The notes under the pieces were generated by a model. The model ran no database searches, was not told the origin of the DNA, and saw only the letters and a program-made list of their open reading frames with translations. This document shows positions 14,535-57,998 of a stretch of DNA of 64,000 nucleotides, in pieces (the first letter of the stretch is position 1; each line of letters begins with the position of its first letter). Location: the NCBI GenBank assembly GCA_963514005.1, contig OY740795.1:868001-932000 (forward strand). The letters run 5' to 3'. Made by a program: the position numbers and the translations under genes. This DNA is from Raja brachyura. Taxonomy: Eukaryota.

Positions 14535-14598
14535 ATGTGGCAGCTGCGGCACATAGAACGTTATTATTACCCTATTCTGGCTGCACTTGGAGTACCAG
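14535..14598 (+). CDS. GPR139/142-like GPCR gene 1, exon 1 (alternative in-frame ATG at 14472)
   Basis: MWQLRHIERYYYPILAALGVP plus G, then GTAGGT donor. Phase 1 joins exon 2 to give GVP-VNLVTIVIL (TM1). Confidence 0.85.
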
Positions 14599-15670
14599 GT
14601 AGGTCAGGGGTGGCTTGTGTGGCGCGAATTCACATACGGTTCTAGGTTGCTTCTTTTTTTTCATACTGGTTACGGGAGAATATTAAAGATAAAGAGAAAT
14701 GCTGCAAAAATCTTCAACCTGTTGCTTAGTGACTGGTGAGAGTGAAACCATGCACATGTTCCTTTACCGTCTCGTCTTAGGTCAAGATTTAAGTCAATGC
14801 TCATGAGTGTTTGCATGTCAAATGTACCTACAGCCAAACAATGACATTCTCACTCGCTGCAGCATTACATGCTTGTTGGCAAAATAAACAGAAAATATTC
14901 AATAATCTAAAAGCCCAAATCCTAGTTCAAAAATATAGTGATCAAAAGCCTGATAGGTATTGGGCCGAAGCAGTTCTTGAAGCGAATGGTCCCGGTTTTG
15001 CAACACCTGTAATTTATTGCAGATGGTAGGAGAACGTGGCCAGTGTGATGCGGGACTTTGGTCGGATATAAGGAATAGGAATATAGTTAAAATTGGTTCT
15101 TGTTTTTGTTGCTAGAGAAGAATACCAGTTTTTGAAAGATTAACTTTCAGATTGAGATTGGGATTCTTGATCAGTCGTAGAGTATATGCTTTGCATGTAT
15201 GTGCCGCGCCAAATTCAATCGCTGGCATCACCTGCCTGAGCTTTCCACTTTTTTCAGTGAGGAGAAGGTTGGCTATATCCAGCCAGATCAGCGAATACAC
15301 CTTGACCGGCAAATCCCGAATTCCTGTTGTGCAGCGTCTCAATGAGTTGAGAAGCGGCAGTTCGGAGGAAATTGCTCTTTCTAGCCAGACGACCAAAACG
15401 TTTTCGTCAAGATTTAAATGTCAAAGGCTAGTGCTCATTAATTTAAAGTGAGCGGGGCAATATTTTTCATAGAGGGTAGTTGGACCTGGGACTGGTAAGG
15501 GTAGTTATAACGGTCGAGGTTCTATAGCTTTTAGATAGGTACACGTATATGTACTGAATCAAAAAGGCAACAGTATAATTGTATAATACACTCCCACAGC
15601 CCATGGATCGATCATTTTATTTCTTAAATTTATCATGCAATTAAACGTAATTGTTTTTATCTTCTCCCAG

Positions 15671-16584
15671 TGAACCTGGTTACGATTGTGATCCTGTGTC
15701 GTGGAAAGTGCGGTCTCTCCAAATGCATCACCCGTTACCTGGTGGCCATGGCTACGGCGGACCTCTCGACGATTATTTTCAAGGCGCTATTAGAGCTGGT
15801 TGCCGGAATCTATTGGACGAACACATTCTTGTTCTATACACCGGTCTGTAAGTTCATTATCTTCATGGCGGCAGTGGCTGTAGACTGTTCCGTTTGGTTT
15901 ACGGTCGCTTTCACTTTTGATCGCTTTGTGGCCATTTCCACCTTGAATATGAGAACCAGGTACTGCACCGAGAGAACCGCGGTGGTGGTTGTAGGGGCAT
16001 TGACCGCGCTCTTCTCTGCAAAGAACATTCCATGGCCCTTCGCGTACATCGCGTATTTAGCAACTTCCGTTGGTCAACTTGGTTGCTTCCGTTCGCCACA
16101 TGTTTATACTCTGACCGGATGGGTGGCGTTTTCTGTGGCCGACCAGTTGTTAACCCCAATTGTTCCGTTCTGTTTGATTTTGTTCTTTAATGCGCTCACA
16201 ATCAGACGCATTTTAGCGGCCATTTGGATCCGCAGGAACCTTCGGGACCTGCGCAGCGCGGACCCGGAGACAGCGAACCGCAGGCAGTCCATTATTTTAC
16301 TCCTTGCAATCACTAATAGTTTTATCATCCTCTGGGCGACAACAATCGCAAATTTTATTTACAATCATAGTATAGTAGCTGCTCATCGCGTAGCGTCGAG
16401 TAACAGTTTTCCTTTGCTCCAGAAAGTTGCAATTCTACTTCAGCTTCTCAGCACCTGCACAAACACTGTAATTTACACCATGACCCAGAGGAAGTTTAGA
16501 AAACAGCTGCTCCAGGCACTCAAACTCCCATGCATTCTCATTCCAAAATCGATGAAACCCATCCGAGCAAATGTCTGTCAGTGA
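15671..16584 (+). CDS. GPR139/142-like GPCR gene 1, exon 2 (325 aa total)
   Basis: Acceptor cttctcccAG, uninterrupted 7TM frame: MATAD (TM2), FTFDRF (TM3), FIILW (TM6), NTVIY (TM7), KFR helix 8. Confidence 0.92.
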
Positions 16585-18230
16585 TTGGTTGCATGTCAGA
16601 ATAAAGGTCAAGCATTCCTTCTTTCCAGAGATGCTGCCTGTTCCGCTCAGTTACTCCAGATTTTTGTGTCAATCTGTGGCTCACGTAATAACGTAGACAA
16701 CTTCGCTCTTATCTCAAAAAATCAACTCAGGACACAAAGGATTCTCTCCACGATTGGAAACACAATTCTCAAGTCACTTACTTGTATCCATTTATTTTTC
16801 GTTTGTTGGGCGGGGGTAGGTGGTTACTTCAATTGTGACCATGTGGAATTGGCTGCTTTGTGCAATGGTCCCTTGGGTAGGGGTTGGAATCGATGTGCTG
16901 CCTTTTGCTTTCTGTGTATGGCAGCCAACGTATTTACCATGTAAGCCACCAGTTAACTATACCTGCCTTGCTTTGTTACCAAAGGCCATGCCGTCAGTCC
17001 TAGGAGCCAAGACACAATTATACCGTTCAAAAGCCTCCACGGTATACTGGTGTCTGAACAAATGTCGCTACATGAAAAGTCCCCTATCCATGTTCTGCAT
17101 AAATGGTCCCTGTCTGACTGATACTCTAGCATTTTGTGTTTGTTTTTCTTTCCAATAACGTCGGCGCTTCCACGTATAATATGCTTCGTGAAATAGTGTT
17201 TTCCTCGCATATCATACGGAAGGAGTCTGTTTCGCCCACCGATTCTTGTCGACTCTCGTAGCAATGACGTCAATTCTATTCCGCGAAGATTTCCCTGCAG
17301 CCTCTTCTTAATGTCATAAGTAAATAAGGATAGGACTAGTATTAGGGCATTCGGCCCATCAAATCTACTCCGCCAATCAATCATGGCTGATCTATCTCTC
17401 CCTTCTAACCCCATTCTCCTGCCTTCTCCCCTTCAACCTTCCCTCCATTGACGAACTGTACACTGCAAGGGCCAGTAAACGAGCGGGTAAGATCATCTCT
17501 ACACCCTCTCACACTGGTCACAAACCCTTTGAATCATTTCCCTCTGGAAGGCGATTCTGGACTGTCAAAGCTGCCACAACCAGACATAAAAGCAGCTTTT
17601 TTTCCACGAGTAGTACCTCAACTCAATAACCAAATGTCTGTAGCCTCCTTTTGCTCTGGTATTTTATTTAATTCATATGTTTAATCAACAATGTTTTATT
17701 ATTAATGTTTAACGTTTTATGTGTCATTCCTAACTGTCACTACTACAAATGTCAATTAACTTATTAATTCATTCACTAGTGAAGACAGAATCAAAGTACC
17801 TTATCAACTATTCCGCCGTTTCCTTGTTCCCCATAATCATTTCACCAGTTTCTGCCTTCGAGTGACCCACATTTGGGTTTTCTAATCTCTTTCTCTTAGC
17901 ATAGCAACTTTTACTATCCTTATTTATATTCTTGGATAGTTTACATCCTGCCAGCATCACCCGAATCAGCTTACCTGCATTTCTCGTTAAAGAATGAACT
18001 GCAGATGCTGGAGAATCGAGGGTACACAAAAAGCCGGAGAAATTCAGCGGGTGCAGCAGCATCTAAGGAGCGAAGGAGATAGGCGACGTTTCGGGTCGAG
18101 ACCCTACCTGCATTTCTTCACTGCTTCTCGCCCGCTCCAACATTTGGCGTAGTCTCCTCCCTCAGCCTGCTCGGCGAAGACTCTCGAGCCAAAGACCCGC
18201 ACTTTTCTCAAAGGCACTTCCCTCGACAAG

Positions 18231-18692
18231 GACTTTCATATGAGGAAAGATTGGATAGACTCGGTTTGTACTCGATGGAATTTAGAAGATTGAGGGGGGA
18301 TCTTATAGAAACCTACAAAATTCTTAAGGGGTTGGACAAGCTAGATGCTGGAAGATTGTTCCCGATGTTGGGGGAGTCCAGAACAAGGGGTCACAGTCTA
18401 AGGATAAGGGGGAATTCCTTTAGGACCGAAATGAGGAAAACATTCTTTACACAGAGAGTGGTGAGTCTCTGGAATTCTCTGCCACAGAAGGTAGTTGAGG
18501 CCAGTTCATTGGCTATATTTAAGAGGGCGTTTGATGTGGCACTTGTGGCTAAAGGGATCAGGGGGTATGGGGAGAAGGCAGGTACGGGATACTGAGTTGG
18601 ATGATCAGCCATGATCACATTGAATGGCGGTGCAGGCTCGAAGGGCCGAATGGCCTACTCCTGCACCTATTTTCTATGTCTATGTTTCTATG
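18231..18692 (+). mobile_element. Young CR1 3' fragment
   Basis: Nearly identical to 4309-4770, with approximate TSD CCCTCGAC(A/G)AGG. Confidence 0.92.
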
Positions 18693-19404
18693 ACCCTCGA
18701 CGAGGCCGCTCCCCAACAGGCCGCTCCCCTTTTCAGCCAATCCTCTTTAAATCTGCCGCTCCTGAAATGCACAATTCCGCAAGAGATTACCTTCTCTGCC
18801 AATCCCCGCACTGACTCCTTCACCTGCCACACTTCTGCCTACCTTGAAGGTAACAATACTTGCGCTGATCAATGGTCAAGGGAGTTTTATTTGAGAACAA
18901 GTGGCAACACCGAATTTTGTTTACACATTGCACTCTCTGAAGGCATTGTTCGTGCTCATGAAACATTTGATATAGTTTAATTATATTTTTTTGTAAATTC
19001 CAATTGATCGCTGGGTTATAGAAATTAATTCCATTAAGGAACACCTGTAGAAAATATATATAAATTTGACATTAATTTATTGAATGCACGGTACATTTTT
19101 TTCAACAAATAAATGTTGTCGCTAAATATATATGAGTTATTTGTTGCGTGTTCATTTTGTGGAGTGCTTACCAAAGAAGTAGAGTTCCACCTCGTTGCCA
19201 CCGTGAAACGTAAATTGCGAGGCAGGAGACTATAATAATAAGTTAATAATAATAATATACTAGCTGATAATAATAAGGAAAGTATGGAAAGCCGTTCGAA
19301 CGCAAGAGATCCAGGGACAACCAATTGACTGCAAACCGCAATTGGCTTCATGGATGGAGCATGGTGGTGGTGGAAGCGTCCCGTTCTGAATGGGTCCCTG
19401 TATC

Positions 19405-22400
19405 TAGGTATGTTACAAAAGTTTCCTTCAGCGGCGCTGCAGTTCTGTCACTGGCCGTGTGCGCGACTTTGGCGCCTTTGAGAGGGGGGCGGGTTTAAAA
19501 TGCCGTTTTCTCCACCCTGTTGAAGTCGATCTTTGTCAGGCTGTTTAGCGGCTGAAGAATAATCGCTCCGCCATGCGTTTTATACTTTGTTTTTAAATAC
19601 TGCTGGATAATTTAATAGCAGGAGTAAAATAAAAATAATTTTCTAAAGCTGTCATCGCCGACAACGGAACGGATCTCACGTACGGGACAAAGCAAGGTAC
19701 GCCGTTTATTTTTACATGTAAACGTGCTTCTTGGGATGCCTTTAATCAAAATTTCACGTTGCGAAAAGGTGATTTAGGCCCCATACGAACCGGCAGTGTT
19801 TTTCGTGCCGAAATGGGGTTTAAATTCACCGCAAATGCAACGTTCCAATCGATCACGATCCACAAAATCTCGCTCGTAAGATGATTTAAATTACCTTTAA
19901 TTTATTGGAATTAAACACCAAATTCCTTCAATTTGGCCTATAAATTCATGACAAATAGGTCATGGGGTCATCCAAGTAAGATTGTTTCATATTTGTTTCA
20001 GAATGCTTCGATCTATAATAACTGAACATTTCATTCCGTTCTCTTAATTTTTAATAAAGTTATGGGCTTTTGACTGTCCTTGATCACAGCTTTTGAGTTA
20101 AATCAATGGAAAAGCAAAAGGGAACAAAATGCAAATTTCCGAGTATGAAAATGGCCATAACCTTTTTTAATACTGAAGATATGAAAGTGAATTGGGTGTC
20201 AAATTAAACTTATTTTTATGCTTTATCTGATGAGATAAATTGAAATGCCGACCCTTCTATCTGCCGCGGGAGTTCACAGCTCTTGTTATCATGGCTGTTT
20301 ATATTCCACCAAGCGCTAGCGATAAGCTAGCACTGAACACCCTGCTAACAACCATCAACAAACTACAGACTGCACACCCTGATGGGATTTTCATAGTGGC
20401 TGGAGACTTCAATCAGGCAAATCTAAAAACTGTCCTCCCTAAATTCCACCAGCATGTCACATGTCCGACGAGAGGTCAAAATACATTGGATCATGTATAC
20501 AGCAACATCAGGGATGGATACAAAGCCTCTCCCCTCCCTCACCTCGGCCAGTCTGACCACCTATCCCTCTTTCTCACCCCAGCATACAGACCTCTTATCG
20601 TGAAAACAAAGCCCAGTGTGAGAAACATAAAGATTTGGCCTGAGGACGCTGCTGCTCAACTTCAGGATTGCTTTGAGCGCACCGAGTGGGATCTTTTTGC
20701 AAATCAGGACATAACAGACAATACATCCACAGTCATGTTCTACATACAGAACTGCACCAATAACGTCACTATCGACAGAGAGGTTAGGTGTTATCCAAAT
20801 AGCAAACCATGGATGACCAGTGAGGTCAGGAAGCTGCTGAGGGAACGCAACTCAGCCTTTGGATCTGGCAATGATCAACTGTACAGCACTGCCAGATCCA
20901 AACTGAAGAGATCAATCAAAGAGGCAAAGGCAGCCTATGGAAGAAGACTAGAGGGGCACTTTAATGAGAGGGACCCCCGGCGTGTTTGGCAAGGTATCCA
21001 GCAACTTACCAACTACAAGGGCAACAGGGGGTTAACCACCAGCAGCAGTAGTAACTTGCTGGCTGAGGAGCTTAACCACTTTTTCGCCCGTTTTGAGCTG
21101 AGTAAGGCGGAGCCTGTGCCTGCAGCCGCGTCCAGCACTGACGACCTGGCATTCACTGTGAGCACAGAGGGTGTCAGGAGAGTACTCCGCAGCGTCAACC
21201 CCAGGAAAGCTGCTGGCCCAGATGGCATCCCAGGGAGAGTACTGCGGGATTGTGCAGACCAGCTGGCGGAGGTATTCAGCGCCATCTTTAACCTCTCTCT
21301 GTCAACATGCACTGTCCCTAAATGCTTCAAGACTGCCACCATTGTGCCTGTTCCGAAAAAAACATCTATCACCAGCTTGAACGACTACAGACCTGTTGCT
21401 CTCACTTCAACTGTGATGAAGTGCTTTGAGAGACTGGTCCTGGCCCACATTACATCCTCACTCCCACCCACCCTGGATCAACATCAGTTTGCATACAGAG
21501 CCAACAGGTCAACAGAAGACGCCATCAACATGGCTCTACATTCTGCACTGACTCACCTGGAGCGCCCCGGCTCATATGTGAGGATGTTGTTTGTAGATTT
21601 TAGTTCTGCATTCAATACCGTCATCCCCAGCAGAATGGTGGACAAACTGTTTGACCTGGGTGTAAATGCCAATACATGCAAATGGATCAAGGACTTCTTA
21701 ACAGACCGCCCACAGACTGTCAGGATGGGGTCCAATCACTCCCCAGTCCTGACGCTCAGCACAGGGGCGCCACAAGGCTGTGTGCTGAGTCCTATTCTCT
21801 ACACAATCTACACTCATGACTGCACACCGACACACATCACAAACCGGATTATTAAGTTTGCGGATGACACGACTGTGGTGGGGCTGATAAATAACAACGA
21901 CGAGTCTGCCTACAGAGATGAAGTCCAAAAACTGACTGTCTGGTGCACTAACAATAACCTGGCACTCAACTCAACCAAAACAAAAGAACTGGTTATTGAC
22001 TTCAGGAGGAGGAGATAAGAACCTCCTCGTCTTTACATCAAATGAGACATGGTGGAGAGAGTCACTGACTTTAAGTTTCTGGGCACATACATCTCCCAGG
22101 ACCTTACATGGACAGTGAACACCATCACTCTCGTAAAGAAGTCACAGCAGCGGCTATATTTCCTGAGGACTCTGCGGAGAGCAAACGTCTCACAGCAGCT
22201 GCTGCTGTCCTTCTACCGGTGCGCCGTGGAAAGCATCCTCTCCTATGGCATCCTGGTGTGGTTTGTTTGCTGCACTGTGGCTGGAAGGAAGGCACTACAG
22301 AGGGTTATTAAAACAGCACAGAGCATCATAAACACTCAACTACCCTCCCTGGAAGACATTTACAAGGCCCGATGTTTACGCCGGGCGAGAAACATCACAC

Positions 22401-22888
22401 AGGACTCATTCCACCCTGCCAACCACCTTTTCAATCTGCTGCCCTCTGGGAGGTGATACGGGTCTTTGAAGGCCCGCACTTGCAGACTAACTAACAGTTT
22501 CTACCCATGTGCCATTAGAGAACTTAACTCAAACAGATAACTCTACGGGCAACACTACACAATTCGGGGTGCAAATAAAAATTTGTCTGCTAGAATGTGC
22601 AATATAATGTGCATTTTTATTATCTATTACTTATTTTATGCATTGATCTTGTAGTAAATGTAAATGTAAGACTAAATGGTTGTTTGTGTTATTGTGTTTT
22701 TGTTCTTTTTTTAAACTTTTTATCCCGTGTTTTTTATTGTTTACCATGGAAGGGGATGCACATGAAATTTCGTTGTACAGTTGATGTGCAATGACAAATA
22801 AACGTATTTGATTTGATTTGATTGCTTTATCTGATGAGATAAATTTCAGACTTGATTTTTTTAATCTCGAAATTTTGTAACATTGCTA
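19405..22888 (+). mobile_element. Non-autonomous hAT-like DNA transposon, copy 1, interrupted by a Rex1 LINE
   Basis: Imperfect TIRs TAGGTATGTTACAAAA / TTTTGTAACATTGCTA. Direct repeat CTGTATC at 19398-19404 and 22889-22895. Homologous to the intact copy at 53209-54239. Confidence 0.85.
20242..22822 (+). mobile_element. Rex1/Babar LINE, 5'-truncated (APE endonuclease part plus RT)
   Basis: ORF 20240-22018 (VAGDFN, LDHVY, SDH, KFADD) and ORF 22049-22456. (ATTTG)n tail; 23-bp TSD at 20219-20241 and 22823-22845. Confidence 0.95.
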
Positions 22889-22959
22889 CTGTATCTAGTG
22901 TTGTGTCTCAGGGATCCTTCCTGGCGATACTACCGTTTGTTTCCTTCATATTAGTATTT

Positions 22960-23262
22960 AGTTTTAGAGATGCAGCGCGGAAATAGGCCGTTCGGTACAC
23001 CGAGTCCTCACCGGCCAGCATTCCCAGCACGCTAACACGATCCAACACAAACGAGGGAAAATTTACAATCATGCCAAGCCAATTAGCCTACAAACCTGTA
23101 CGTCTTTGGAATGTGGGAGGAAATCGAAGATCATGGAGGTCATCCGCGCAGGCCACTGGGAAAACGTACAAACTCACTGCAGACAGCACCCGTAGTCAGG
23201 ATCGATACCGTGTCTCCGGCGCTGTAAGGCAGTAGTGCTACAGCTGTGCCACTGTGCCGCCC
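22960..23262 (-). mobile_element. tRNA-derived SINE (HE1-like)
   Basis: Reverse strand begins GGGCGGCACAGTGGCACAGC, with a B-box-like GGTATCGATCC and a CR1-like tail. Confidence 0.75.
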
Positions 23263-23289
23263 GAAATATGTTGTCAATTATATCAATTG

Positions 23290-24190
23290 TTTATATGGGA
23301 ATGTCAGACATGATCTGCAGGTTTGCAGATAACACTAAAGTGGGCGGTATCGTCCATAGCGAAAATGGTTGGGAAAAGTGCAGCAGGCTCTTGATCAGTT
23401 TTGCAAGGGCGCTGAGCAATACTTAATGGAGTTTCATGCAGATAAGTGCAAGATGTATTTTTGGAGTTAACCCAAGGCAGGACTTTCGTAATGAATGTCA
23501 GGGCCCTGGGAATTGTAGTGGAACGCGGGGATCAGGAAGTGCAGGACACGTAGCTCATTGTGCATGGCGTAAACGGTATATGAGAAGGTCAAGAAGGGTT
23601 GTGGTGTATTGACCTTCAACTTTCAGGGTACTATAGAGGTTGTGATTACATCTTACATTTCAACAAGACCTTGGTGGGGCCGCATTTGAACGATTGTTTT
23701 CAGTTTTGTCCACGCTCCTATAGGAAGGATTAAGCAGCGATAAGTGTACAGATGATTTTCGAGGATGTTGGCTGGATCTGAGCTCCTAGGCTCTATGGAG
23801 ATGTTGCGTAGGCTAGTATTTATTCCTGAGAGACGCTATTCTGGGTGTTAATAGCTTCGGGGGACTACTTGGGTCGAATGCGCAGAGCCCTTCGTCCAGA
23901 GCAAGAGTATCAAGAACCAGACGACAAAGGTTAAAGATGAGAGGGAAAAACATTTATTAGGAACCGGGGGGAGGGGTCAACGTTTTTACACAGATGGTGG
24001 TGAGTATACGGAACAAAATGCCACAGGAGGTAGATGAGGCAGGTACGACAACAAAATTTGATGGGTACATGGATACGACTGGTTTAGGGGGAAATTGGAT
24101 AAAAGCGGTACGGGGATTCGTGTAGATGGGGCATTATTTCCGCATGGGCATGTTGAGTGGAGTTATGGTTCCTTGCTGTGTGACTCTATG
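23290..24190 (+). mobile_element. Old degenerate CR1 fragment (continues from about 19330)
   Basis: RFADNTKVGG and a decayed 3' region. It is the host of the hAT-like insertion and the SINE. Confidence 0.65.
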
Positions 24191-24240
24191 AGCCTGCGAC
24201 TAATTGTGTTTTTTTTTTTACTTTCGTTGTTATCAAGCAG

Positions 24241-25108
24241 TAGGGGGCGCCGTCGCGTATGGCTGCCCTGCCAGCAGCTGTTAGGCCTTTCACCCTTTTT
24301 TTATTTTTCCGGAGTTACAAGTGTTTAGGAGGTCTTCTAGTCTTTTTATGTCGGGGGTGGGGGGGTCGAGGGGGAAACTGTTTTTCTCAGTCCCTACCTT
24401 GACGGAGATGCGGCTTTTCTCCGAGCCGTGTTTTCTCCACTTCCTCACGGCCGACCAACAGTCTGGAGCGGCGTTTCCAGCCAGAACCGGGCTGGACTTC
24501 AGCTTCGGCGGCGGTGCAGCGCTGAGGGACTATCGTGGAGCGGGCGATGCATTGCCTGGGTCGCCATGCGGTAGGCGCCGGAGTGCTGTGACCGCCGAGA
24601 TCAACATCGCGGAGCAGCGGTCTGTGGAACTTCCAGCCGCAAGCGGCGCTGAGCTTTAAAGACCGTGGAGCCTGGGATCTCACACTGAGGTCGCCAGTGT
24701 CGGAGCTCCGACCAGCGCGGTCCGTGGACTTCGGGAGCCGCGGTCTCCGGGGGGGGGGAGGGGTGGGGGAGCGGCCACTCCAGACACTCTGAGCCGCTGA
24801 TAGTGTTCACTCGACGCCAGAGCTTCATCATCTGGCGAGATGGCCTGGAGCATCGGGCTGCCGTAGCGGCGACTGCGGAGGCGTCAATAGGCCCGACTAT
24901 GGGTGAACAGGGGACGGGACTGGACTTTTGATGCCTTCCCCCACAGTGGGAACCATTGCAGGGGAATGTTTTTATGTTTATTGTTAAATTCTTTAATGTT
25001 GTTTCTTATCTTCATTTGCTGCAATGGCAAGTCAAATTTAACTACACCAATTGGTGTATGTGATAATAAATGTCCTTTGTATCCTTTGTATCCTTGTATC
25101 CCTGTATC
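24241..25108 (+). mobile_element. GC-rich non-autonomous retroposon with Rex1-like tail
   Basis: Starts TAGGGGGCGCCGTC like the 2140 end of copy 1. Ends AATAAATGTCC followed by short TGTATCC repeats. Confidence 0.65.
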
Positions 25109-25242
25109 TAGCGAAATACATTGGACAAATCACCAGATTTCTGTATGTGCTTCTATATTATCACCTTCAGTCTTCGATGAATGGACTTATGTTCGATGAT
25201 GTTGTCTTGACTAAAACCGAACAATAACCTCAAGTCTCTGAA

Positions 25243-25444
25243 NNNNNNNNNNNNNNNNNNNNNNNNNNNNNNNNNNNNNNNNNNNNNNNNNNNNNNNNNN
25301 NNNNNNNNNNNNNNNNNNNNNNNNNNNNNNNNNNNNNNNNNNNNNNNNNNNNNNNNNNNNNNNNNNNNNNNNNNNNNNNNNNNNNNNNNNNNNNNNNNNN
25401 NNNNNNNNNNNNNNNNNNNNNNNNNNNNNNNNNNNNNNNNNNNN
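25243..25444. other. Assembly gap
   Basis: Run of N. Confidence 1.
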
Positions 25445-25829
25445 GCTTGTGTCTGCACGTGCTTGGGCGTTCGTGCGCGCTTGTGTGCGTACGTGTGAGC
25501 GCATGTGTGCGTACGTGTGAGCGCGTGCGCGTGCGGGCGCGAGTGGATGTGTGCCTGTGTGTATGTGCTGCGCGTGACACTGTGTGTGGTGTTATCTACG
25601 ATGGCACTGGAGTGCGGCTGGTCACAGAGGAAGCTGTAGTGTACCCCAGCACAATCGCCTCACTCTTTTAAATATTTTTCCTCCTTACACGCTTGTCACT
25701 GTTTCTGCATTGTGTCATTTTCCTCTTCGCTTTACCTTTTGTACTGGTTTTAGGCTTGATTCTATTCCTGTATGGTATTATATCAGCTGATTGTATTGCA
25801 CACATGCAAAAGCACTTCAATATACTATT

Positions 25830-26155
25830 TTATTATACACGGCAATTCTCCTTCCGTGCCCTGCCATCTGCTCTGGATGCGATGCGCCGGCACTGGCAGG
25901 ACCCCGATTTCAGTCTCACTCACCCAGACCAACAACGGACCACAACGATATTTCATCCAACGGGAGATCCGCGCCTTCAACAGACGATTTCTTGCCAACT
26001 CCTCTCTCACTATACTTGTGGAAGATTGCAACCTTCACGGGGTCCACCCTGTTTCAACGAATGCAATTAACCTGGCGTGCACATGCAGAAGATCAAACAG
26101 AACAATGTGTCTCACAACTTTAGGCTGTGCACGCCATACGCACGAAGAAGCAGAA
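25830..26155 (+). mobile_element. Unclassified LINE 3' end with (GAA)n tail
   Basis: Second copy at 44160-44298. Decayed ORF2 C-terminus-like peptide QRYFIQREIRAFN. Confidence 0.6.
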
Positions 26156-27231
26156 CACTAAACATGAAATAATAAAATAGTATGCATAGTACCATTCTCA
26201 AAGTTGATCCACATTCAATTTTCCTCGAAGCAAAAAACGCGCGGAAGTCCCCCATTGGCTACGCATTGGCTATAAAGAAAACCCTGAAAAAAACTGGGTT
26301 TTAACACTCTCTCATGCCTATATTTTCGTTACAAATAGGATCGTAACACATTGCAATTAATTAAACACATATTCTCCATTTCTTTGTTCGGGATGTGATT
26401 CAGGGTTCATGAATTCATTCTTTTTTACAGCAACGTAAGGCCATTCGGCCCATTAAATCTACGTCGCCATTCAATCACCTTCTCCTCTCATCCCACTTTC
26501 TCCTGCTTTTGCCCAGTACCCCTGACGCCCTTCCTAAATGTGGTTTAAACTGAGTGCCGTTAGCGCAGGAGTTGAAGCACTCGGCGCCTTCGAGGAAGCA
26601 AAGTACACCAGGCCTCTTTGGTGTAAGAATAAATCCAATTGTAACCGAGCTATTGGCCACCGTTCTTCCGCAGACCGATCTTCTTGCTGTCTTTCTATGA
26701 AATCGCTCGAATTGTAACAGGCGCTCAAATTCCGTGTTGTTCGGGCGACGCAGCTTGGGTGGCCGCCGGCGCAGTCCATTCTTTGGAACGCTAAGTTCCC
26801 CAGTATGAAGCGAACAACAGCGCGGGTTTCTCACATTCTCTTGGACAATACTTCACATTCATTACCCGTTCCAAATTAAAACATATCATCGGCCCGACAG
26901 CCCACCTCAATGTCGCCGAGCAACGGTGAGTGAAGCTGTCAACAATAGAACTGTTTCCATCCCCCACACCCTTGCCTCTTTCGTGGGCCGTCTTTGACTT
27001 GTATATCTGCAGGTGGGTCTATCAGATAGCACTCTGATAGTAATGACGTGCCCGGAAACTGACGTTCCCCAACTAGTTTGTGTACGACGTAAACGTAAAT
27101 ATCCGAGATCATTGCAGTTCATTGGTGGCATCTGGCGCAGAAACTCGCAGCTCAATCCGGCCGTTTGCGCCGCATCAGCTCTGTGGAGAAACACTGGCCG
27201 TCAAAGCAGTTCGGGGTCCTCTGTTCCAGGG

Positions 27232-27274
27232 ATGGAAATCCTGCTCATCTTCGCGATTTCTGTATTTCACCTCC
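27232..27274 (+). pseudogene. Orphan TCR V leader exon (no V exon visible downstream)
   Basis: MEILLIFAISVFHL plus C, then GTGGGT donor. Same length (43 nt), phase and MEILL start as the leader at 8075, and a shared upstream motif (15 of 19 nt). Confidence 0.65.
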
Positions 27275-27745: not shown

Positions 27746-30700
27746 CATAGAAACATAGAAACATAGAACATAGGTGCAGGAGGATGCCATTCGGATCTTC
27801 GAGACAGCACCGCCGTTCATTGTGATCATGGCTGCTCGTCCCCTGTCAATAACCCGTGCCTGTTTTCTCCCCATATCCTTTGAATCTATTAGCCCCTAGA
27901 GCTCCATCTAACTCTCTCTTAAATCCATCCAGTGACTTGGCCTCCACAGCCCTCTGTGGCAGGGAATTCCATAAATTCACAACTCTCTGGGTGAAAAGGT
28001 TTTTTCTCACCTCTGTCTTAAATGACCTCCCCTGTATTCTAAGACTTTGGTCCCTGGTTCTGGACTCGCCCAACACGGGGAACATTTTCCTGCATCTACC
28101 TTGTCCAGTTCTTTTATAATTTTATATGTTTCTATAAGATTCCCCATCATCCTTCTAAACTCCAGTGAATACAAGCCTAGTCTTTTCAATCTTTCCTCAT
28201 ATGAAAGTGCCGCCATCCCAGGGATCAATCTCGTGTAACTACGCTGCACTGTCTCAATCACAAGGATGTCCTTCTTATAATTAGCAGACCAAAACTGTAC
28301 ACAATAATCCAGATGTGGTCTCACAAGAGCCCTAAACAACTGCAGAATAACATCTTTATTCCTATACTGAAATCCTCTTGTTATGAAGGCCAACATTCCA
28401 TTAGCTTTCTTTACTGCCTGCTGTACCTGCACACCAACTTTCAGCGACCGGTGTACAAGGACGCCCAGGTTTCGCTGCGCCTCCCCTTACCTAACCTAAC
28501 CCCATTGAGATAATAATCTGCTCCCTTGTTTTTGCCGCCAAAGTGGACAACCTCACATTTATCTATATTATACTGCATCTGCCACGCATCTGCCCACTCA
28601 CTCAACCTGTCCAGGTCTCCCTGCCACCTCCTAACATCCTCTTCACAGTTCACACTGCCACCCAGCTTTGTGTCATCCGCAAACTTGCTAGTGTTGCTCC
28701 TAATTCCCTCTCCAAATTATTAATATATATGGTAAACAGTTGCGGCCCCAACACCAAGCATTGCGGCACTCCACTCGCCACTGCCTGCCATTCTGAAAAG
28801 GATCCATTCACCCCTACTCTTTGTTTCCGGTCTGCCAACCAATTTTCTATCCATGTCAACACCCTACCCTCAATACCATGTGCTCTAATGTTAGTCACCA
28901 TTCTACCGTGCGGGACCTTATCAAAGGCTTTCTGAAAGTCTGGATACACTACATCCACTGGCACCCCTTCATCCACTTTACTTGTCACATCCTCACAAAA
29001 TTCCAGTAGAATAGTCAAGCACGATTTCCCTTTCATAAGTCCATGTTGACATAGACTAATCATTTTACTGCTATCCCAATGCCCCATTATTACCTCTTTA
29101 ATAATTGACCCCGGCATCTTTCCATCTACCGAAGTCAGGCTAACTGGTCTTTAATTCCCCGTTTTCGCTCTCGCTGCTTTCTTGAAAAGTGGGATAACAT
29201 TAGCTATCCTCCAATCCACAGGAACTGATCCTGAATCTGTCGAACATTGGAAAAAGAACACCAATTCGTCCACTATTTCTAGAGCCACCTCCATAAGGAC
29301 TCTGGGATGCCGATCATATGGGCCAGGGGATTCATCATCCTTCAGTCCCACATTTGACTTTGCTATTCTATTTCCCCTAGCATATCTAAATATGCCTTTA
29401 CTGTCCTTCTTTATATTCCTGGCCAGCTTCCATTCGTACTTCATCTTTTCAGCCCGTATTGCCCGTTTTGTTTCCTTCTGTTGTCCTATGAAAGTTTCCC
29501 AATCCTCTGGCTTCTGGCTATGCTTTGCTGTGTTATACATCTTTTACTTTAGAAACATAGAAACATAGAAAATAGGTGCAGGAGTAGGCCATTCGGCCTT
29601 TCGAGCCTGCACCGCCATTCAATGTGATCATGGCTGATCATCCAACTCAGTATCCCGTACCTGCCTTCTCTCCATACCCCCTGATCCCTTTAGCCACAAG
29701 TGCCACATCTAACGCCCTCTTAAATATAGCCAATGAACTGGCCTCAACTACCTTCTGTGGCAGAGAATTCCAGAGACTCACCACTCTCTGTGTAAAGAAT
29801 GTTTTCCTCATTTCGGTCCTAAAGGAATTCCCCCTTATCCTTAGACTGTGACCCCTTGTTCTGGACTCCCCCAACATCGGGAACAATCTTCCAGCATCTA
29901 GCTTGTCCAACCCCTTAAGAATTTTGTAGGTTTCTATAAGATCCCCCCTCAATCTTCTAAATTCCATCGAGTACAAACCGAGTCTATCCAATCTTTCCTC
30001 ATATGAAAGTCCTGACATCCCAGGAATCAGTCTGGTCTAATTTTATTCTATCCCTAACTTCTCTTGTCAGCCACGGTTGCCTCCTACTCCCCTTAGAATC
30101 TCTCTTCCTTTTTGGAATAAAATGATCCTGCATCTTCCGGATTACGCCGAGAAATTCCTGCCCTTGTTGTTCCTTCATCATTCCTGGTAGGATCCTTTTG
30201 CAGTCTACCTTGGCCAGCTCCCCTTTCATGCCTCTATAGTCCACTTTGTTCAACTGCATCACTAACACTTCCCGATTTAACGTTCTCCTTCTAAAATTGC
30301 AGATTAAAACTAATCATATTATGACCACTACCTCCAAGCGGTTCCTTTACTTCGAGTTCTCTTATCATATCTGGTTCATTGACCAACACTAAATCCAGAA
30401 TTGCCTTTTCTCTGGCTGTCTCCATTACAAGCTGCTCCAAGAATCCATCTCGGAGGCATTCTACAAACTTTCTTTCTTGGGGTACTGAACCAATCTGATT
30501 TTCCTAGTCTACCTGCATATTGAAATCCTACATCACCACAGTGGCATTACCTTTGTTACATGCCAGTTTTAACTCCTGCTGCAACTTACACCCTACATCC
30601 GCGCTACTATTTGGGGGTCTGGAGATAACACCAATTAGTGTCTTCTTGCGTTTGCAATTCCTCAACTCAATCCACAGTGACCCTACCTCGTCAGTCCCTA

Positions 30701-31030: not shown

Positions 31031-31309
31031 GGGTCATTAACCACCCCTTTACTTAGGATAATGTGTTCACTGGTAGTCACCGTGCTGGAGGAGAGAATGT
31101 GCTCTCGTGGAAGGAGTACAGAGAGAGTTGCTGCCACGACTTGAAGGCCTGGGCTACAGGTAGCGGTTCAGCAGGCACGGAATGTATTCTTTGGAGTGCA
31201 GGAGGATGAGAGGTGGTTTTATAAGTGTAAGGTCAGGAGGGAAATAGATGTGATCGATCAATTTACCCAGATAGTCTTTTACCCAGGGTAGAGAATTACT
31301 ATCTAAATG

Positions 31310-34540: not shown

Positions 34541-34543
<3 letters not shown>

Positions 34544-34762: not shown

Positions 34763-34934
34763 NNNNNNNNNNNNNNNNNNNNNNNNNNNNNNNNNNNNNN
34801 NNNNNNNNNNNNNNNNNNNNNNNNNNNNNNNNNNNNNNNNNNNNNNNNNNNNNNNNNNNNNNNNNNNNNNNNNNNNNNNNNNNNNNNNNNNNNNNNNNNN
34901 NNNNNNNNNNNNNNNNNNNNNNNNNNNNNNNNNN
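34763..34934. other. Assembly gap
   Basis: Run of N. Confidence 1.
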
Positions 34935-36973: not shown

Positions 36974-37896
36974 TTACAAACCTGCCCTCGACGTCAAACA
37001 TTTGCGGGCAACACTCAACGGGTATTGAACCGCAAACGTCAACTTCTCCCTGAATTTGGACTGCGTACCCACATAAATGCACGTGTTGATGCAGGAACTA
37101 AGAATCTCCAACATATACCCGCTTTCCTGGAGGATAAACTGAGGCTGATTCGAATTGGAACCGCTGACGTAATTGTTGCTTGAAATTTGTACAAATAGGA
37201 AATTGACAATATACGTCAAACGCAACAGGATAAAACTGCCCGAGATGGCCATGAGTAAGATAATGGACTTTCTTCTGCTCTCCATCTCCGAGTCGCTCTG
37301 TTTGTCGCTGTTGCTCTGGGCTCGGAGTCTGCTGCGCGCTTTACTGGCCACAAGAATGTATCTAACGGTGAGGAAATTGAGCAGCAAAATTAGGACGAAG
37401 GGGAGACATGGGTTTAACATAAGATGTACCCACTCATAAAATCTCCACGCAGCTAGAGTATAAAATATTTCCTTCAAGTTGCAATACCAAGCGACGTCAT
37501 TGATGATATACATGGGCTCGTATGCAAAGTAAAGAGGAATGTTCTTCAAACAGTCGAGCATCCAGACGATTGCTATAACGACTGCCGCTGTTTTCTCGGT
37601 GCAATACCTCAATTTCAGTTTCTGGCAACAAATAGCAATGAACCGATCAAAGGTGAACGCGACCGTTAACCAGGCTGAAGCGTCTTTGGCAATCCAACTG
37701 AGGACAATAATTAGACTGCAGGCCGGGGTGGTGGAGAGAATGCTGTCCGAGAAATAAATGGCCCGAAGACGGCTGAGTACCACAGCAGTAACAATGACCA
37801 GGAAATCCGCCACCGCCATGAACAACAGATAGCGAGTGATACATTTCGAGAGGCCGCACATTCCATGCGACAGAATCACGACTGTCGCCAAGTTCG
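36974..37896 (-). CDS. GPR139/142-like GPCR gene 2, exon 2 (330 aa total)
   Basis: Acceptor ctattgcAG, then (A)NLATVVIL. Intact 7TM with MAVAD, FTFDRF, NTCIY, KFR. Confidence 0.92.
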
Positions 37897-51620: not shown

Positions 51621-53208
51621 TTACGTCATTCAGCCTATCAAGTCCACACCGCCATTCAATCATGGTCGATCTATCTCTCCCTCCTCAACTCATTCTCCCG
51701 TCTTATACGCATAACATCTGACTACTCTACCAATCGAGAAAAGTTACTGGAATATATAGAGAACTCGAGGAGAAGAGCGGCTCAGTGAGCATATCAACTA
51801 CAAGCATTGGCTGTCGAAATAAGATTGAATTCCAATAGGAATCATAGGAAGTTATCCATTCTCTCTCCGTTCAGAGTTTTGAACGTTCGCTTCCTCCTTT
51901 GTGAAACAAAATATTTATCTACCGACCTACAAAATCCAGGGATTAATTGCAGTGCTGACAGCAAAGAAGGGATTATCCGGTTGTTTTGATAGAAGCGGGT
52001 TTTAGAGGATTCGGTTCAATGATTGGACAAACCAAATGTAAATATCCCAAGCAATTTTAGTTTATTATAGTTACAGTAAGCACAGAATAAAATAATTAAT
52101 AAAGCAACATCCCTCACGACGTTCTGCACGTCCGACTTCACTCATGTGAGCGATGACTAGTTGCGAGCACTGTTAGGGATTCCACCACATGGGCAGTTCC
52201 TGCATGCGCTGGTTGGCTGGCAGATAGAAGATCCGGGCATCATTCAGGATCACAGTCGAAGGTGAACCCTCTCCCGTTGAACTCGCTGGCCACATGCACG
52301 TATACAACCAGTAAGCCCGTGCTTCTAATTTAAGCTGCAAATAAGCGGTGACTGTTTTTTTAAACAGGCTGCTTCTCCGATTATTATTAACAAAAATGTT
52401 GTATATTACATAATGCACCGAACTAGTCTCGGATACATATGAGAAAGAAAGGTTTATCTTATCTTCTCACCAGGTCTTACTGCAGCAGCGTGATCAGGGA
52501 CTTCGCGATTTAATGGATCGTCTGAGTGATCCTGAGCATCTTGCCAAGCTCCTACTTATTTTCCTCAGATCACCTGCATGCTTGACATATGCTGTTAGTG
52601 GAAGATAATTCTATTTTAGCTGCAAAAACCGGTTTAATCCTCACTTTAAACCGGTTTAACACCATTCCCATGCAGACTATCATGTAAAGCAAGAGCACCC
52701 CTCAAATGGTCGGACCTCCAATCATATAATATTTATTTGATTGATCGTTCAGCTCGAGGATGAAGATAGAGGCACACAGACTTCAACGGTACGGTCCACA
52801 TAATGTCTCCTATTGTACAAAGCACCGTGTTTTATACACATTTACGGCTAAGCGGCGCCTGTTACCTAAAAATGAAAACGAATACTTATTACTTAATGAC
52901 CAATGCAGAACGAGATAGCACGTCGGGAATTCCAGTAATGCCTTGAATGCATTTTTTTTACTAGCTTTCCAATATCTTGTCCGGGTTGGTGACGGGTGGC
53001 GCTCGTGCTTGAAACATCCCTTTATGGAAGTATAGATCAGACCGTGGTTAAATGGGGTGCAACGAGGAAATTATCAGCTAACTCCCATGAAAACGTGCTC
53101 TCTCGGCGTTCCATGGCCTCTTTTCGGCTGCTCTATTGAACAGTTATCCTTGCAACAATCCCATTTAGTCGGTGTTCGTAGATATTCCTATTCGGCCTGT
53201 AGAGTTAA

Positions 53209-54239
53209 TAGGTATGTTACAAAACTTACTTTGAGCAGCGCTGCAGTTCTGCCGCTCCCCGTGTGCGCGACTTTGGTGCCTTTCAGAGGGGGGCGGGCTT
53301 AAAGTGCCGTTTTTCCACAGGCAGGGAAAATCGATCAATGTCGGGCGATTTCGTTGCGGAAGAAAAATCGCTCCGACATTTCATCAATGAAGGTATTTTT
53401 AAATTACGCTAAATTATTTATTAGCTAGAGTAATTTAAAAATCACCTTCAAAAGCCGTGAGCACCGACAACCGGAAGGATTTTGCGTAGGGGAGAAAAAA
53501 AGGCACACAGTTTATTTTTATATTAAAAGTTGTTTTTTCGGGAGGCTTTAATAATATTTTCATGTTGCGAAATGGGGTCCAAAAAATGTATGAACAAACA
53601 GTATTTTTCCTCCCGACTTCACCGCTAACCGCAACGTTCTAATCCACCGCATTCCACTAAAACCCACTCGCGTTGATTTAAATGGCCATTAATTTACAGG
53701 CATAAAACACTAAATTCCTTCCATTTGGCTCAGAAATTCATGAAAATTAGATTTAAAAATTATGTTATATTGTGGATTATTGTGTGAATGTTATTTGGAC
53801 ACTTAGGCAATTTTAAAAAAGTTTATCTTTTCTTAAGAAATGGATAGATGTTTAGATCTACTCATTGAATTTTGTAATTAGCTACAATTAGATAACTAAC
53901 TAATTATATGCTTTAATTTCAGGTCATCCAAGTAAGATTGTTTCATATTTGTTTCAGAATGCTTCAATCTATAATAACTGAAAATGTCACTGAGTTCTCT
54001 TAATTTTTAAGAAAGTTATGGGCTTTTAACTGTTCCAGATCACAGCTTTTGAGTTAAGTCAATTGAAAGGCAATGGGGAACAAGATGCGAATTTCCGAGT
54101 ATGAAAATGGCCATAACGTTCTTAACACTGAAGATATGAAAGTGAATTAGGTGTCAAATTAAACTTATTTGTATGCTTTATCTGATGGGATAAATTGCAG
54201 ACTTGATTTTAAAAATCTCAAAATTTTGTAACATTGCTA
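53209..54239 (+). mobile_element. Non-autonomous hAT-like DNA transposon, copy 2 (1031 bp, uninterrupted)
   Basis: Same TIRs as copy 1. Direct repeat GAGTTAA at 53202-53208 and 54240-54246. Confidence 0.88.
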
Positions 54240-54279
54240 GAGTTAATGCAGCTTTCAGAACAACCGACATACTGCTCTG

Positions 54280-55146
54280 CAGTATGCAATTTTGGTCCCG
54301 TAATTTCAGGAAGGACATTCTTGCTATTGAGGGAGTGCGGCGTCGGTTTACAAGGTTAATTCCCGGGATGGCAGGACTGTCATATGCTGAGAGAATGGAG
54401 CAGCTGGGCTTGTACACTCTGGAGTTTAGAAGGATGAGAGGGGATCTCATTGAAACATATAAGATTGTTAAGGGTTTGGACACGCTGGAGGCAGGAAACA
54501 TGTTCCGGATGTTGGGGGAGTCCAGAACTAGGGGGGCACAGTTTAAGCAATTTAGAACGGAGACGAAAAAACACTTTTTCTCACAGAGAGTGGTGAGTCT
54601 GTGGAACTGTGCCTCAGAGGGCGGTGGTGGCCGGTTCTCCGGATGCTTTCAAGTGAGAGAACAAGGGGTCACAGTCTAAGAACAAGGGGGAATTCCTTTA
54701 GGACCGAAATGAGGAAAACATTCTTTACACAGAGAGTCGTGAGTCTCTGGAATTCTCTGCCACAGAAGGTAGTTGAGGCCAGTTCATTGGCTATATTTAA
54801 GAGGGCGTTAGATGTGGCACTTGTGGCTAAAGGGATCAGGGGGTATGGAGAGAAGGCAGGTACGGGATACTGAGTTGGATGATCAGCCATGATCACATTG
54901 AATGGCGGTGCAGGCTCGAAGGGCCGAATGGCCTCTACTCCTGCACCTATTTTCTATGTTTCTATGTTTCTATGTTTCTATGAGAGCTAACTATGGGTCT
55001 TAAAATAGCGGAGTCAGTGGGTATGGGGAGAAGGCAGGAACGGGGTACTGATTGGAGATGATCAGCCATGATCACATTGAATGGCGGCGCTGGCTCGAAG
55101 AGCCGAATGGCCTACTCCTGCACCGATTGTCTATTGTCTATTGTCT
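54280..55146 (+). mobile_element. CR1 3' fragment with a nested young CR1 piece (about 54660-54981)
   Basis: Two consecutive CR1 3' ends with different tails. The host resumes after (TTTCTATG)n. Confidence 0.85.
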
Positions 55147-55573
55147 ACAATCTACTTTGCTCACTGTCCATGAAATCCACCCAGATTCCGCTTCGATCCC
55201 AAAATTACATTGTTATTTTCAAAATGCACTTAACCATCACTTATCTGAAATTGGAATGTGCGGGTAATCGGTGGCACCTGTCCCACTTCGCCTCCCTTGC
55301 GTCATCTATTCTCAAGCTATTATGACATTGCACTATGCCAGATACTTGTGCACTTTGGGCCACCGGTTACCAAGACCATTGTCTTGAGTCTTTTAAGGAG
55401 ATAGGTCTTGCGACATTCCAGATGGATATTTGTTTATTAATCGAAAGTATTAGATAATCGTGTCTACATAATTCACTGGCATATGAATGAGCTTTTATCT
55501 TGCAGTACGTTTCTACAGTGGATGTCCCCGTATCCATCATTACGCACTCTATTTGAGACAGAATTGTAAGAAT

Positions 55574-56487
55574 TTACCTATAGTTGAACCTTTTTTTAAT
55601 TAGATTGAAGGGGTATTTAATAGCAAACGTTAACTGCCCCCTGAATCTAGTTTGCGTCGCTGCATATACGCAGGAGTTAATGCACGAACCGAGAAGCTCC
55701 AACATGTGTCCGCTTTCTTGCAGGATAAACCTTGGATCGTTGGAATTGATGCCGCTGGCATAACTGTTGCCTGTAATTTGCACGTACAGAAAATTCACAA
55801 GGTAGATCAACCGCAATAAGATAAAACATCCCGAGATCACCATGAGTAAAATGATAGACTTTTTTCTGCTCTCCATCTCCGGGTCACATTTACTTTCTCC
55901 GTTGCTCTGGCATCGGAGCCTTCTGCGGGATCGACTGGCTGCGAGAATGTGCCTGACTGTCAAAACATTGAGCAGCAAAATCAGTAGGAAGGGGACGCAT
56001 GGGTTCAAAACAGGGCGTTGCCAGTCATAGATTCTCCATACAACGGAAGTATAATAGCTACTTTTGATGACGCAGTACCAGGGTACATTATCAGTGACGT
56101 ACATTGGTTCCAGAGGAAAGAAAGAGGGAATGTTTTTCAAACAGACCAGCACGCCAACTGTCCCGATGACGACCGCCGCGGTTTTGTCTGTGCAATATCG
56201 CAGTCTCAATCGTTGGACGCAAATGGCGGTGAATCGGTCGAAGGCAAAAGCTACCGTTAACCAAACAGAAGTGTCTTTGGAAACCCAGCTGAGGACAAGA
56301 ATGAGTGTGCAGCCCGGTGTGGTCGAGAAGAAACTAACCGGGAAATAAATAGCCCGTAGGCGGCTTAATATCACGACGGTAACGATGACCAGGAAATCCG
56401 CCACCGCCATGAACACCAGGTAAAGGGTGATACACTTGGAGAGTCCGCACTTTCCCTTCGACAGAATCACAATCGTCACCAAGTTCG
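55574..56487 (-). CDS. GPR139/142-like GPCR gene 3, exon 2 (327 aa total)
   Basis: Acceptor ccacttgcAG, then (A)NLVTIVIL. Intact 7TM with MAVAD, FAFDRF, NSCVY, RFR. Confidence 0.92.
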
Positions 56488-56829
56488 CTGCAAGTGGGAG
56501 GCAGAGTAGTTAATAATGTAACTGTCCAATTGTGGCCAATTAATCAGGACATTGGTAGACAAATCATCACATTAACAGATTGCTTATAGATTTCGAATAA
56601 TCAATGTTAAATTCGTGATCCCAAATATACGTCCATTCTAGAATGAAAAATGTCACTTGCTTTGAATCATATGAAAATTTAGGTTAGAACAGAACAAAAA
56701 CACTTCGAGTTACAAGAAACTGCAGATGTTGGAACCTTCACGAATACACAGTCGGCTGTTCGGGCAGCATATCTGTGGGGAAATATACAGTTCAAGACTA
56801 AACCTTGAGAAGGCATTTTTCCGTTTTCA

Positions 56830-57090
56830 GGATACAGTGCGGAAACTGACCCTTCACCCACCAAGTCCGCGCCGACCAGCGATCGTTCTGTACTACCCAG
56901 GATGGATATTTGGTTTACGGAAGCCAATTAACCGACAAACCTGCACGTGGGAGGAAACGGGAGAAGCCCCAGGCGGTCACAGAGAAAATTTGCAAACTCC
57001 GTGCAGATGATATCCGTAGTCAGGATCAAACCATGGCCACTGGCGCTGTCAGGCAGCGACTCTACCGCTGAATCACTGTACCGCCCCCAC
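56830..57090 (-). mobile_element. tRNA-derived SINE (HE1-like); second partial copy at 57250-57440 next to (GTTTA)n
   Basis: Homologous to 22960-23262. Confidence 0.7.
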
Positions 57091-57928
57091 GACTTCAGAT
57101 TCTGACCCGCATCTGTGGAGGCAATGGATTGTCGACGTTTCTTATCAATTTTGTCTTGTTTAGTTCTGTTTAGTTCCGCTAGTTTAGTGCAGTTCAGTTT
57201 GATTTAGTTTAGTTTAGTTTAGTTTAGTTTCGTTTAGTTTAGTTTAGGTTAGAGATACAGTGTGGAAACAGGCCCTTCGGTCAACTGAGTCCGCTCCGAC
57301 CAGTGATCCCCGGACACAAACACTACCCTACACACACTAGGGAGAATTTATATTTATATCAAGCTAATTAGCATACAAACCTGTGTGCCTTTGGAGTGTG
57401 CGAGCAAATCGCAGCACCCCTGGAAAACCATGGCGGGAAAATGTACAATATAATACAATACAATCAGTTTTAATCGTCACATTGCACATAAAGTGCAAGT
57501 GAAACGAAATTGAAAACAAAACAGACAGCACAATTAGAATTAATTCGGAAACAACTGACGAAGCAAATCTGTAACGTCATTTTATAAAAGCACGACTGAC
57601 CAATTGGTCGCGGCGCATGGATGAAGCGGAGGACAGGGGTAAAAGCTGATGTGCTTAAAATATATGTAACTGATCCTCTCCGGTAACAACAACAAAAAGT
57701 AATTCAGCGGGTCAGGGAGCATCAGTGAAGGGAAGGGAGAATGGACAAGAGACGTTTACAGTCGGAACCCTCTTAAGAACGATTGTGGTAGCGGAGATAA
57801 AGCTGGAAAAAGGGTGAGGGCGCTGCAATATTTGGCGAATGATAGGTGGATACAGGTGAAGGGTGTGGAAATGGCAGATAGGTACAGAAGAGACAAACTC
57901 GAAAAGTGCATCTGCGACAAAACATTAC

Positions 57929-57998
57929 CTGGAACACCAAACACCGCAAGAATAGTATAATAAATAGCAAAGACCGGCCCGTTTCCAGGTGCGTGCAT
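57929..57998 (-). CDS. GPR139/142-like GPCR gene 3, exon 1
   Basis: MHAPGNGPVFAIYYTILAVFGVP plus G, then GTAATG donor; phase 1; paralogous to 40148-40217. Confidence 0.88.

Follow-up and report, generated by a model that had tools for sequence, protein, structure and literature searches.

A large elasmobranch family of predicted GPR139-related orphan receptors with a diversified putative ligand pocket

A 64,000-nucleotide stretch of the Raja brachyura genome (NCBI GenBank assembly GCA_963514005.1, contig OY740795.1, positions 868,001 to 932,000 of the forward strand), referred to here as the window, carries three genes, G1, G2 and G3, that are predicted to encode class-A (rhodopsin-like) G protein-coupled receptors (GPCRs), together with the remnant of a fourth copy. 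We have found that the three are intact members of a very large elasmobranch expansion of an orphan class-A lineage in the wider GPR139-related group. Among the paralogues of this expansion, the putative ligand pocket has diversified and the cytoplasmic face, made up of intracellular loops 1 and 2 (ICL1 and ICL2), the inner ends of transmembrane helices TM3, TM5 and TM6, and TM7, has remained nearly constant. On balance, the family is probably a sensory, chemoreceptor-type repertoire, a reading in which we infer both the ligand differences between paralogues and the role in chemical sensing.

The gene models were read directly from the DNA and the remnant was located by tblastn. Exon 2 of each gene is an open reading frame (ORF), and exon 1 of G2 and of G3 was read from the DNA with the help of tblastn. 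The features are as follows.

14535-14598, plus strand: G1 exon 1, with the start codon, the short N-terminus and the first half of TM1, ending in G-V-P and the first base of the split codon
14599-15670, plus strand: G1 intron, phase 1, 1072 bases, GT..AG, with the donor GT at 14599-14600
15671-16584, plus strand: G1 exon 2, from the rest of TM1 to the stop codon; Pfam 7tm_1, E 5.7e-14
40217-40148, minus strand: G2 exon 1
40147-37897, minus strand: G2 intron, phase 1, 2251 bases, GT..AG
37896-36974, minus strand: G2 exon 2, from the rest of TM1 to the stop codon; Pfam 7tm_1, E 5.3e-16
57998-57929, minus strand: G3 exon 1
57928-56488, minus strand: G3 intron, phase 1, 1441 bases, GT..AG, with high-copy repeats inside
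56487-55574, minus strand: G3 exon 2, from the rest of TM1 to the stop codon
43346-43474, plus strand: 43-codon remnant of a fourth copy, reaching from the end of TM3 into the start of TM4

All three genes have two exons with frames and splice sites intact, and code for 325 (G1), 330 (G2) and 327 (G3) codons. In each of them the intron splits a codon after its first base, between G-V-P and the TM1 Asn. A first-pass annotation of this DNA had described three intact paralogues of 325-330 residues plus a remnant, with a phase-1, TM1 intron after GVP in common, and the gene models agree with it on both points. A tblastn search of the window with a family protein recovered G3 at E 1.6e-176, G2 at 1.1e-142 and G1 at 4.5e-65, and the Pfam 7tm_1 scores of the three genes (52.7, 59.3 and 56.2 bits) lie above the cut-off of 30.5. 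In the remnant (tblastn E 5e-8 and 1.3e-9) the DRF motif has decayed to HRC, and no other pieces of its gene were found by tblastn around 43346-43474.

The same annotation had listed short N-termini free of glycosylation sequons, DRF and a TM7 N-x-x-x-Y without Pro as common features, and all of these are read in the three genes. The N-termini ahead of TM1 span only ~8-10 residues and hold no N-x-S/T, DRF is found in G1, G2 and G3 alike, and TM7 reads NTVIY, NTCIY and NSCVY across the three. The intracellular loops that it had singled out as conserved (CGLSKCIT and YCT) are likewise present in all three genes, as CGLSKCIT in ICL1 and RYCT in ICL2, and ICL1 has the lowest entropy in our alignment of 117 family sequences (rows). 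Among the class-A microswitches, N1.50, D2.50, the D-R pair, N7.49 and Y7.53 are kept and Y3.51 is replaced by F. The prolines P6.50 and P7.50 are missing from all three window genes; relatives show departures of a similar kind from the class-A pattern, as does GPR139 itself in the case of TM7. The cysteines of the disulfide linking TM3 to extracellular loop 2 (ECL2) are almost invariant, with Cys 3.25 in 115 and the ECL2 Cys in 114 of the 117 rows.

At the toggle position, 6.48, G1 has Trp, and both G2 (37150-37152, minus strand) and G3 (55826-55828, minus strand) have Arg. Of the 117 family rows, 88 have W here, 18 have Y, 6 have R and 2 have K. A buried Arg, as in G2 and G3, is unusual at the site where class-A receptors have the toggle-switch Trp. 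Exons were searched singly; in the PDB, structure and representative searches a little-skate protein, P0001, 93% identical to G3, served as the full-length stand-in. An AlphaFold2 model of this protein (predicted local distance difference test, pLDDT, 84; predicted template modelling score, pTM, 0.81) has seven helices together with helix 8 and a hairpin in ECL2.

With G3 exon 2 as the query, a protein search gave 1172 relatives (90% clusters) at E<=0.001. All of the named proteins among the best 120 of these 1172 are from sharks, skates and rays (three are unnamed), and by our own count of the 120-best list at least 44 come from Heterodontus francisci (horn shark), 21 from Heptranchias perlo (sevengill) and 10 from Leucoraja erinacea. 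Many family proteins lie on the same chromosomes among the matches listed. In an exhaustive search of 50%-identity representatives, 109 scored below 1e-30, and the 10 that were checked for source, which include the deepest branches, are all elasmobranch. A search of the ESM Atlas returned only clusters of the family itself and invertebrate peptide receptors of a generic kind. Judged from these searches, the family is large and specific to the lineage of sharks, skates and rays; the number of clusters and the count in the horn shark bear out the view that the window genes belong to a real family of this kind. The names of the best 120 are 'probable GPR139' throughout, apart from two 'hypothetical protein' and two 'GPR15-like', and full-text literature searches found no paper on an elasmobranch GPR139-related expansion. 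The expansion has thus already been predicted by NCBI pipelines, in hundreds of members and under a misleading automatic name, and is undescribed in the searchable literature. The earlier description of the family as 'unrecognised' is therefore correct for the literature and not for the databases, in which its members already carry a name.

Two orphan clades, both much nearer to the family than GPR139 is, are the closest relatives in our tree, which was calculated with IQ-TREE under LG+C20 from a set of sequences that did not include bona fide GPR139 and GPR142. The elasmobranch family and an amphibian/sturgeon orphan clade are sisters with support of 99/99, and a clade found adjacent to TMEM183A is separate from both (99/99); the elasmobranch family as a monophyletic group has weaker support (85/61). 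The amphibian/sturgeon gene, also named automatically 'probable GPR139', is found in frogs, salamanders and caecilians (Xenopus, Pleurodeles, Microcaecilia) and in Acipenser, with one listed protein per species. It is ~32% identical to the family and ~70% identical across amphibians, and shares with the family the TM3-ICL2 block T-F-D-R-[FY]...K-L-K-x-x-Y-C-T and the ICL3 block D-P-E-M...R-R-x-S-I. It differs in having retained Pro at 6.50 and Lys at 6x51.

The TMEM183A-adjacent orphan (P0217, P0284, P0287 and P0385) is present in coelacanth, catshark, sturgeon, amphibians, teleosts, turtles and squamates, with one or a few proteins per listed species and ~34% identity to the family, and sharks carry both. 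No mammal or bird was found among the matches listed. It is part of the same GPR139-related group and has ERF, a TM7 of N-M-Y-L-Y without Pro and a TM1 of G-I-P-S-N. The paper that came nearest to the subject, an analysis without shark genomes (Rinne et al. 2019, PMC6504862), proposed orphan 'GPR210' clades beside GPR139/142 in coelacanth, gar and teleosts, and the TMEM183A-adjacent gene may be one of these proposed orphans. We also note that annotation pipelines sometimes fuse it to TMEM183A.

In all three clades, alternative gene models split exactly at the TM1 G-x-P | x-N junction. This suggests that the position of the TM1 intron is shared with both orphan clades and, since the models of three clades diverge at one and the same junction, that the intron is ancestral to the group. 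As far as can be told from these comparisons, DRF/ERF, the Pro-less TM7, the TM1 motif G-x-P-x-N and the TM1 intron are inherited traits. The DRF-type motifs, the missing TM7 Pro and the TM1 motif with its intron are common to the relatives and are not novelties of the family.

GPR139 is the closest receptor of solved structure. In a single-sequence PDB search with P0001 it scored 50 bits compared with 24 for the next, and with a family profile 103 bits compared with 78. The identity between GPR139 and P0001 is only ~22%, and in Foldseek, where GPR139 ranks first, all peptide-type class-A receptors score nearly equally, so that this search does not discriminate. Four proteins from the representative search, P0255, P0261, P0263 and P0269, were considered as GPR139/142 orthologues and rejected, having only 45-60 bits to human GPR139. 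Human GPR139 (7vug, 9m42) shares with the family the TM1 pattern Y-Y-x-x-L-x-x-x-G-x-P-A-N (G-L-P-A-N in GPR139), the TM3-ECL2 cysteine pair and a Pro-less TM7 N-x-x-x-Y, which in GPR139 reads N-F-F-L-Y. It differs in having DRY, and W-A-P in TM6. There is also a difference in copy number: GPR139 is single-copy in mammals, as the first-pass annotation stated, whereas the window family runs to dozens per genome. The proposed derivation of the family from GPR139/142 does not follow from these data, in which the sister is the amphibian/sturgeon orphan (99/99) and GPR139 is simply the nearest receptor with a solved structure.

The variability of each segment of the receptor was calculated as the mean entropy in bits over the 117 family rows. 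The lowest value is that of ICL1 (0.47 bits) and the highest are those of ECL3 (2.15 bits), the outer half of TM3 (1.79 bits) and ECL2 (1.64 bits). The helices average 0.89 bits over their inner halves and 1.50 bits over their outer halves. The earlier observation that ECL2 and TM5 vary strongly was thus roughly right, in particular for ECL2, and missed that ECL3 and outer TM3 vary more. Within the outer halves, 24 generic class-A pocket positions have 1.85-1.89 bits compared with 1.36-1.39 for the other positions (permutation p 0.0015-0.0017). The single-copy clades, used as a control, give the following comparison of pocket and other outer-half positions.

Expanded family: mean pairwise identity 0.61; pocket 1.85 bits; other outer-half positions 1.36 bits (permutation p 0.0017)
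TMEM183A-adjacent single-copy clade: mean pairwise identity 0.59; pocket 0.76 bits; other outer-half positions 1.23 bits
Amphibian clade: mean pairwise identity 0.77; pocket 0.05 bits; other outer-half positions 0.47 bits

The control clades have the reverse pattern, with a pocket less variable than its surroundings, and in the TMEM183A-adjacent clade this is so at equal overall divergence. A variable pocket combined with a conserved intracellular side, as had been anticipated for the family, is therefore supported by the difference between the two classes of position and by its reversal in the single-copy relatives. An unbiased ranking of positions against the single-copy clade gives the largest gains in variability at 3.28, 3.29, 6.54, 5x43, 6x51, a site in ECL2 and 3.33; 7x38 has also gained variability and is lower in the same ranking. 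Conservation is higher among the paralogues than among single-copy orthologues at sites in ICL1-3 and at the inner end of TM5.

Several of these positions correspond to binding residues of GPR139, which acts in the brain and responds to L-Trp, L-Phe and certain peptides (PMC5218887, PMC5430874). Mutagenesis has shown that F109, H187, W241 and N271 matter for L-Trp, L-Phe and synthetic agonists, and R244 contacts ligands in the binding model of the same paper (PMC5430874). At the positions equivalent to F109 (3x33), H187 (5x43), W241 (6x48), R244 (6x51) and N271 (7x38), G3 has W, R, R, Y and H, G2 has W, H, R, Y and Y, and G1 has A, D, W, T and I, so that each window gene keeps at most one of the five. 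The positions matching F109, H187 and N271 are each occupied by 13-15 residue types in the 117 rows. The residue at 6x51 is basic (R or K) in all eight aligned single-copy relatives, amphioxus included, and in only 4 of the 117 family rows. As the ligand residues of GPR139 have not been kept, amino-acid sensing cannot be transferred from GPR139 to the family.

The three genes differ considerably in age. The best protein match of G3 is from Leucoraja erinacea, with 92-93% identity. G2 and G3 belong to a skate-specific subclade and are separated by a synonymous divergence (dS) of ~0.8-1.2. G1 is the most divergent, with 44% identity to both G2 and G3, a long branch and deviations in 8 of the 75 columns that are conserved in the family; closest to it is a sevengill-shark gene (57% identity), and it represents a much older subfamily. 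The presence in the window of old duplicates of differing age together with a remnant is what birth-and-death evolution would leave behind, and this part of the first-pass annotation fits the data. The ratio of non-synonymous to synonymous divergence (dN/dS) is 0.18-0.28 for G2 compared with G3, and ~0.33-0.35 for G1 compared with G2 or G3, the latter at saturated dS. The 22 amino-acid differences between G3 and its little-skate counterpart are mostly conservative and spread out, with no clustering in the pocket.

Contigs assembled from sequencing runs provide a comparison over a shorter distance. Those of one organism are identical to G3. Those of a second organism differ from G3 exon 2 by 4 synonymous and 1 non-synonymous substitutions, with one more non-synonymous in a single run, giving an omega of ~0.08. 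The chance of four of five differences being synonymous under neutrality is ~0.013 by our own binomial estimate, which takes ~24% of sites as synonymous. In four DNA runs the part of the G3 intron at 56790-57560 has summed contig depths of 10^4-10^5, with many joints and loose ends. In the region of G3 exon 1 (57948-58050), all four runs have a second contig with 10 differences beside the exact one; a close paralogous G3-like exon 1 would, on account of this second contig, be present elsewhere in the genome.

The remainder of the window is rich in retroelements and has two assembly gaps, both between G1 and G2.

25243-25444: assembly gap, 8.7 kb past G1
34763-34934: assembly gap, 2.0 kb past the G2 stop codon
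2677-4672, 20240-22018 and 54203-54679, plus strand: ORFs or fragments of LINE-type (long interspersed nuclear element) reverse transcriptase
28650-29117, 41554-42030, 48156-48701, 50131-50808 and 62313-62903, minus strand: ORFs or fragments of LINE-type reverse transcriptase

Both gaps are outside every exon and intron, and G2, the remnant and G3 are on gap-free sequence. The scaffold is needed only to place G1 with respect to the other copies, in linkage, distance and orientation. Pfam RVT_1 was confirmed for three of the LINE-type ORFs, and these elements may have helped local duplications and deletions. At 9217-9653 (plus strand), ~5 kb upstream of G1, there is a germline antigen-receptor V segment (Pfam V-set, E 1.2e-11). 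Its ORF ends in Y-Y-C-A-L-S, and it is followed by a recombination signal made up of the heptamer CACAATG (9615-9621), a 23-base spacer and the nonamer GCAAAAACT (9645-9653). The segment looks like one of the T-cell receptor alpha/delta type.

How is the expansion best explained? In the sensory, chemoreceptor-type repertoire that we favour, the ligand would have to be bound in the pocket between the helices because the extracellular N-terminus is almost absent, and many receptors for different small ligands would share one common transducer. The OR, TAAR and ORA/V1R families likewise show lineage-specific expansion, tandem arrays and pseudogene remnants, with a short N-terminus, a single exon for nearly all of the coding sequence, and a pocket that varies along with a cytoplasmic face that is conserved. 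Unlike them, the window family has a coding intron in TM1, and its kinship with them is only through membership of class A. Canonical OR, TAAR and ORA genes are very few in sharks (PMC11979771), and the shark-nose paper makes no mention of other GPCRs. In its boldest form, the proposal would make the family a main, hitherto overlooked chemoreceptor repertoire of elasmobranchs, with one or a few receptors in each olfactory, taste or solitary chemosensory cell, filling the gap in OR, TAAR and ORA genes and recruited from an internal orphan receptor that is single-copy in amphibians and sturgeon; this we consider unlikely.

A number of points weigh against a sensory repertoire. The sequencing-run search found no RNA run carrying G3, just six DNA-like contig sets that belong to two studies. 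A study of catshark sensory organs has no GPCR among the 50 genes of greatest olfactory specificity (PMC11979771), a list that receptors with sparse expression would not be expected to enter. In the 1.5 kb ahead of their start codons, the three genes have no similarity in common and no Olf/EBF (O/E)-type sites. The coding sequence is, on average (and only averages were computed), under purifying selection. The pocket positions were numbered by us from motifs and the alignment to GPR139, and the tree lacks bona fide GPR139 and GPR142. In addition, variable pockets occur in immune and somatosensory GPCR expansions too. An immune or somatosensory repertoire, in which receptors on leukocytes, on mucosal cells or on peripheral sensory neurons would respond to small molecules and peptides of microbial or endogenous origin in the manner of the formyl-peptide, chemokine-like and MRGPR-type expansions, is fitted equally well by the tandem lineage-specific expansion, the variable pocket and the conserved signalling face. 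The profile matches that follow GPR139 include chemokine receptors (CCR4, 78 bits), and the antigen-receptor V segment is found 5 kb away from G1; this is a matter of neighbourhood only, and proximity to a V segment is no indicator of function. The short N-terminus speaks against chemokine-type protein ligands, and we regard this alternative as possible, though improbable.

With a brain receptor, GPR139, as the nearest solved structure, the family could also consist of neuromodulatory brain receptors that have a GPR139-like role for an internal amino acid or peptide and have merely been multiplied in elasmobranchs. The loss of the GPR139 binding residues, including the basic residue at 6x51, argues against this, and the receptor of an internal neuromodulator is not usually present as dozens of paralogues per genome that differ in their pockets, making the explanation decidedly unlikely. 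It is highly improbable that the genes are mostly functionless segmental duplicates, slowly decaying in a retrotransposon-rich genome and with a pocket made variable by relaxed constraint. The window is indeed full of LINE reverse-transcriptase fragments and holds one remnant, and the long branch of G1 with its altered conserved columns would be in keeping with decay. However, three frames with their splice sites are intact in spite of a dS of ~1 between copies, dN/dS is 0.18-0.35 between the paralogues and ~0.08 between G3 and a close relative, and the paralogues differ less from one another at the cytoplasmic face than the single-copy orthologues do, which is not expected of relaxed constraint.

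Cartilaginous fish have keen chemical senses but just a handful of OR, TAAR and ORA genes, and in current work the shark nose is said to depend almost wholly on V2Rs. With its diversified pocket and constant signalling face, a class-A family of this size, dozens of copies in each genome, is a definite candidate for a further repertoire of sensory or immune-sensing receptors; should its expression prove broad or brain-only, it would be an ordinary lineage-specific expansion of an orphan receptor. The group offers a natural contrast: in amphibians and sturgeon the gene is single-copy and its pocket frozen, and in elasmobranchs it forms a multigene family that is diversifying. Through this contrast, the recruitment of an internal receptor to a repertoire can be put to a direct test.

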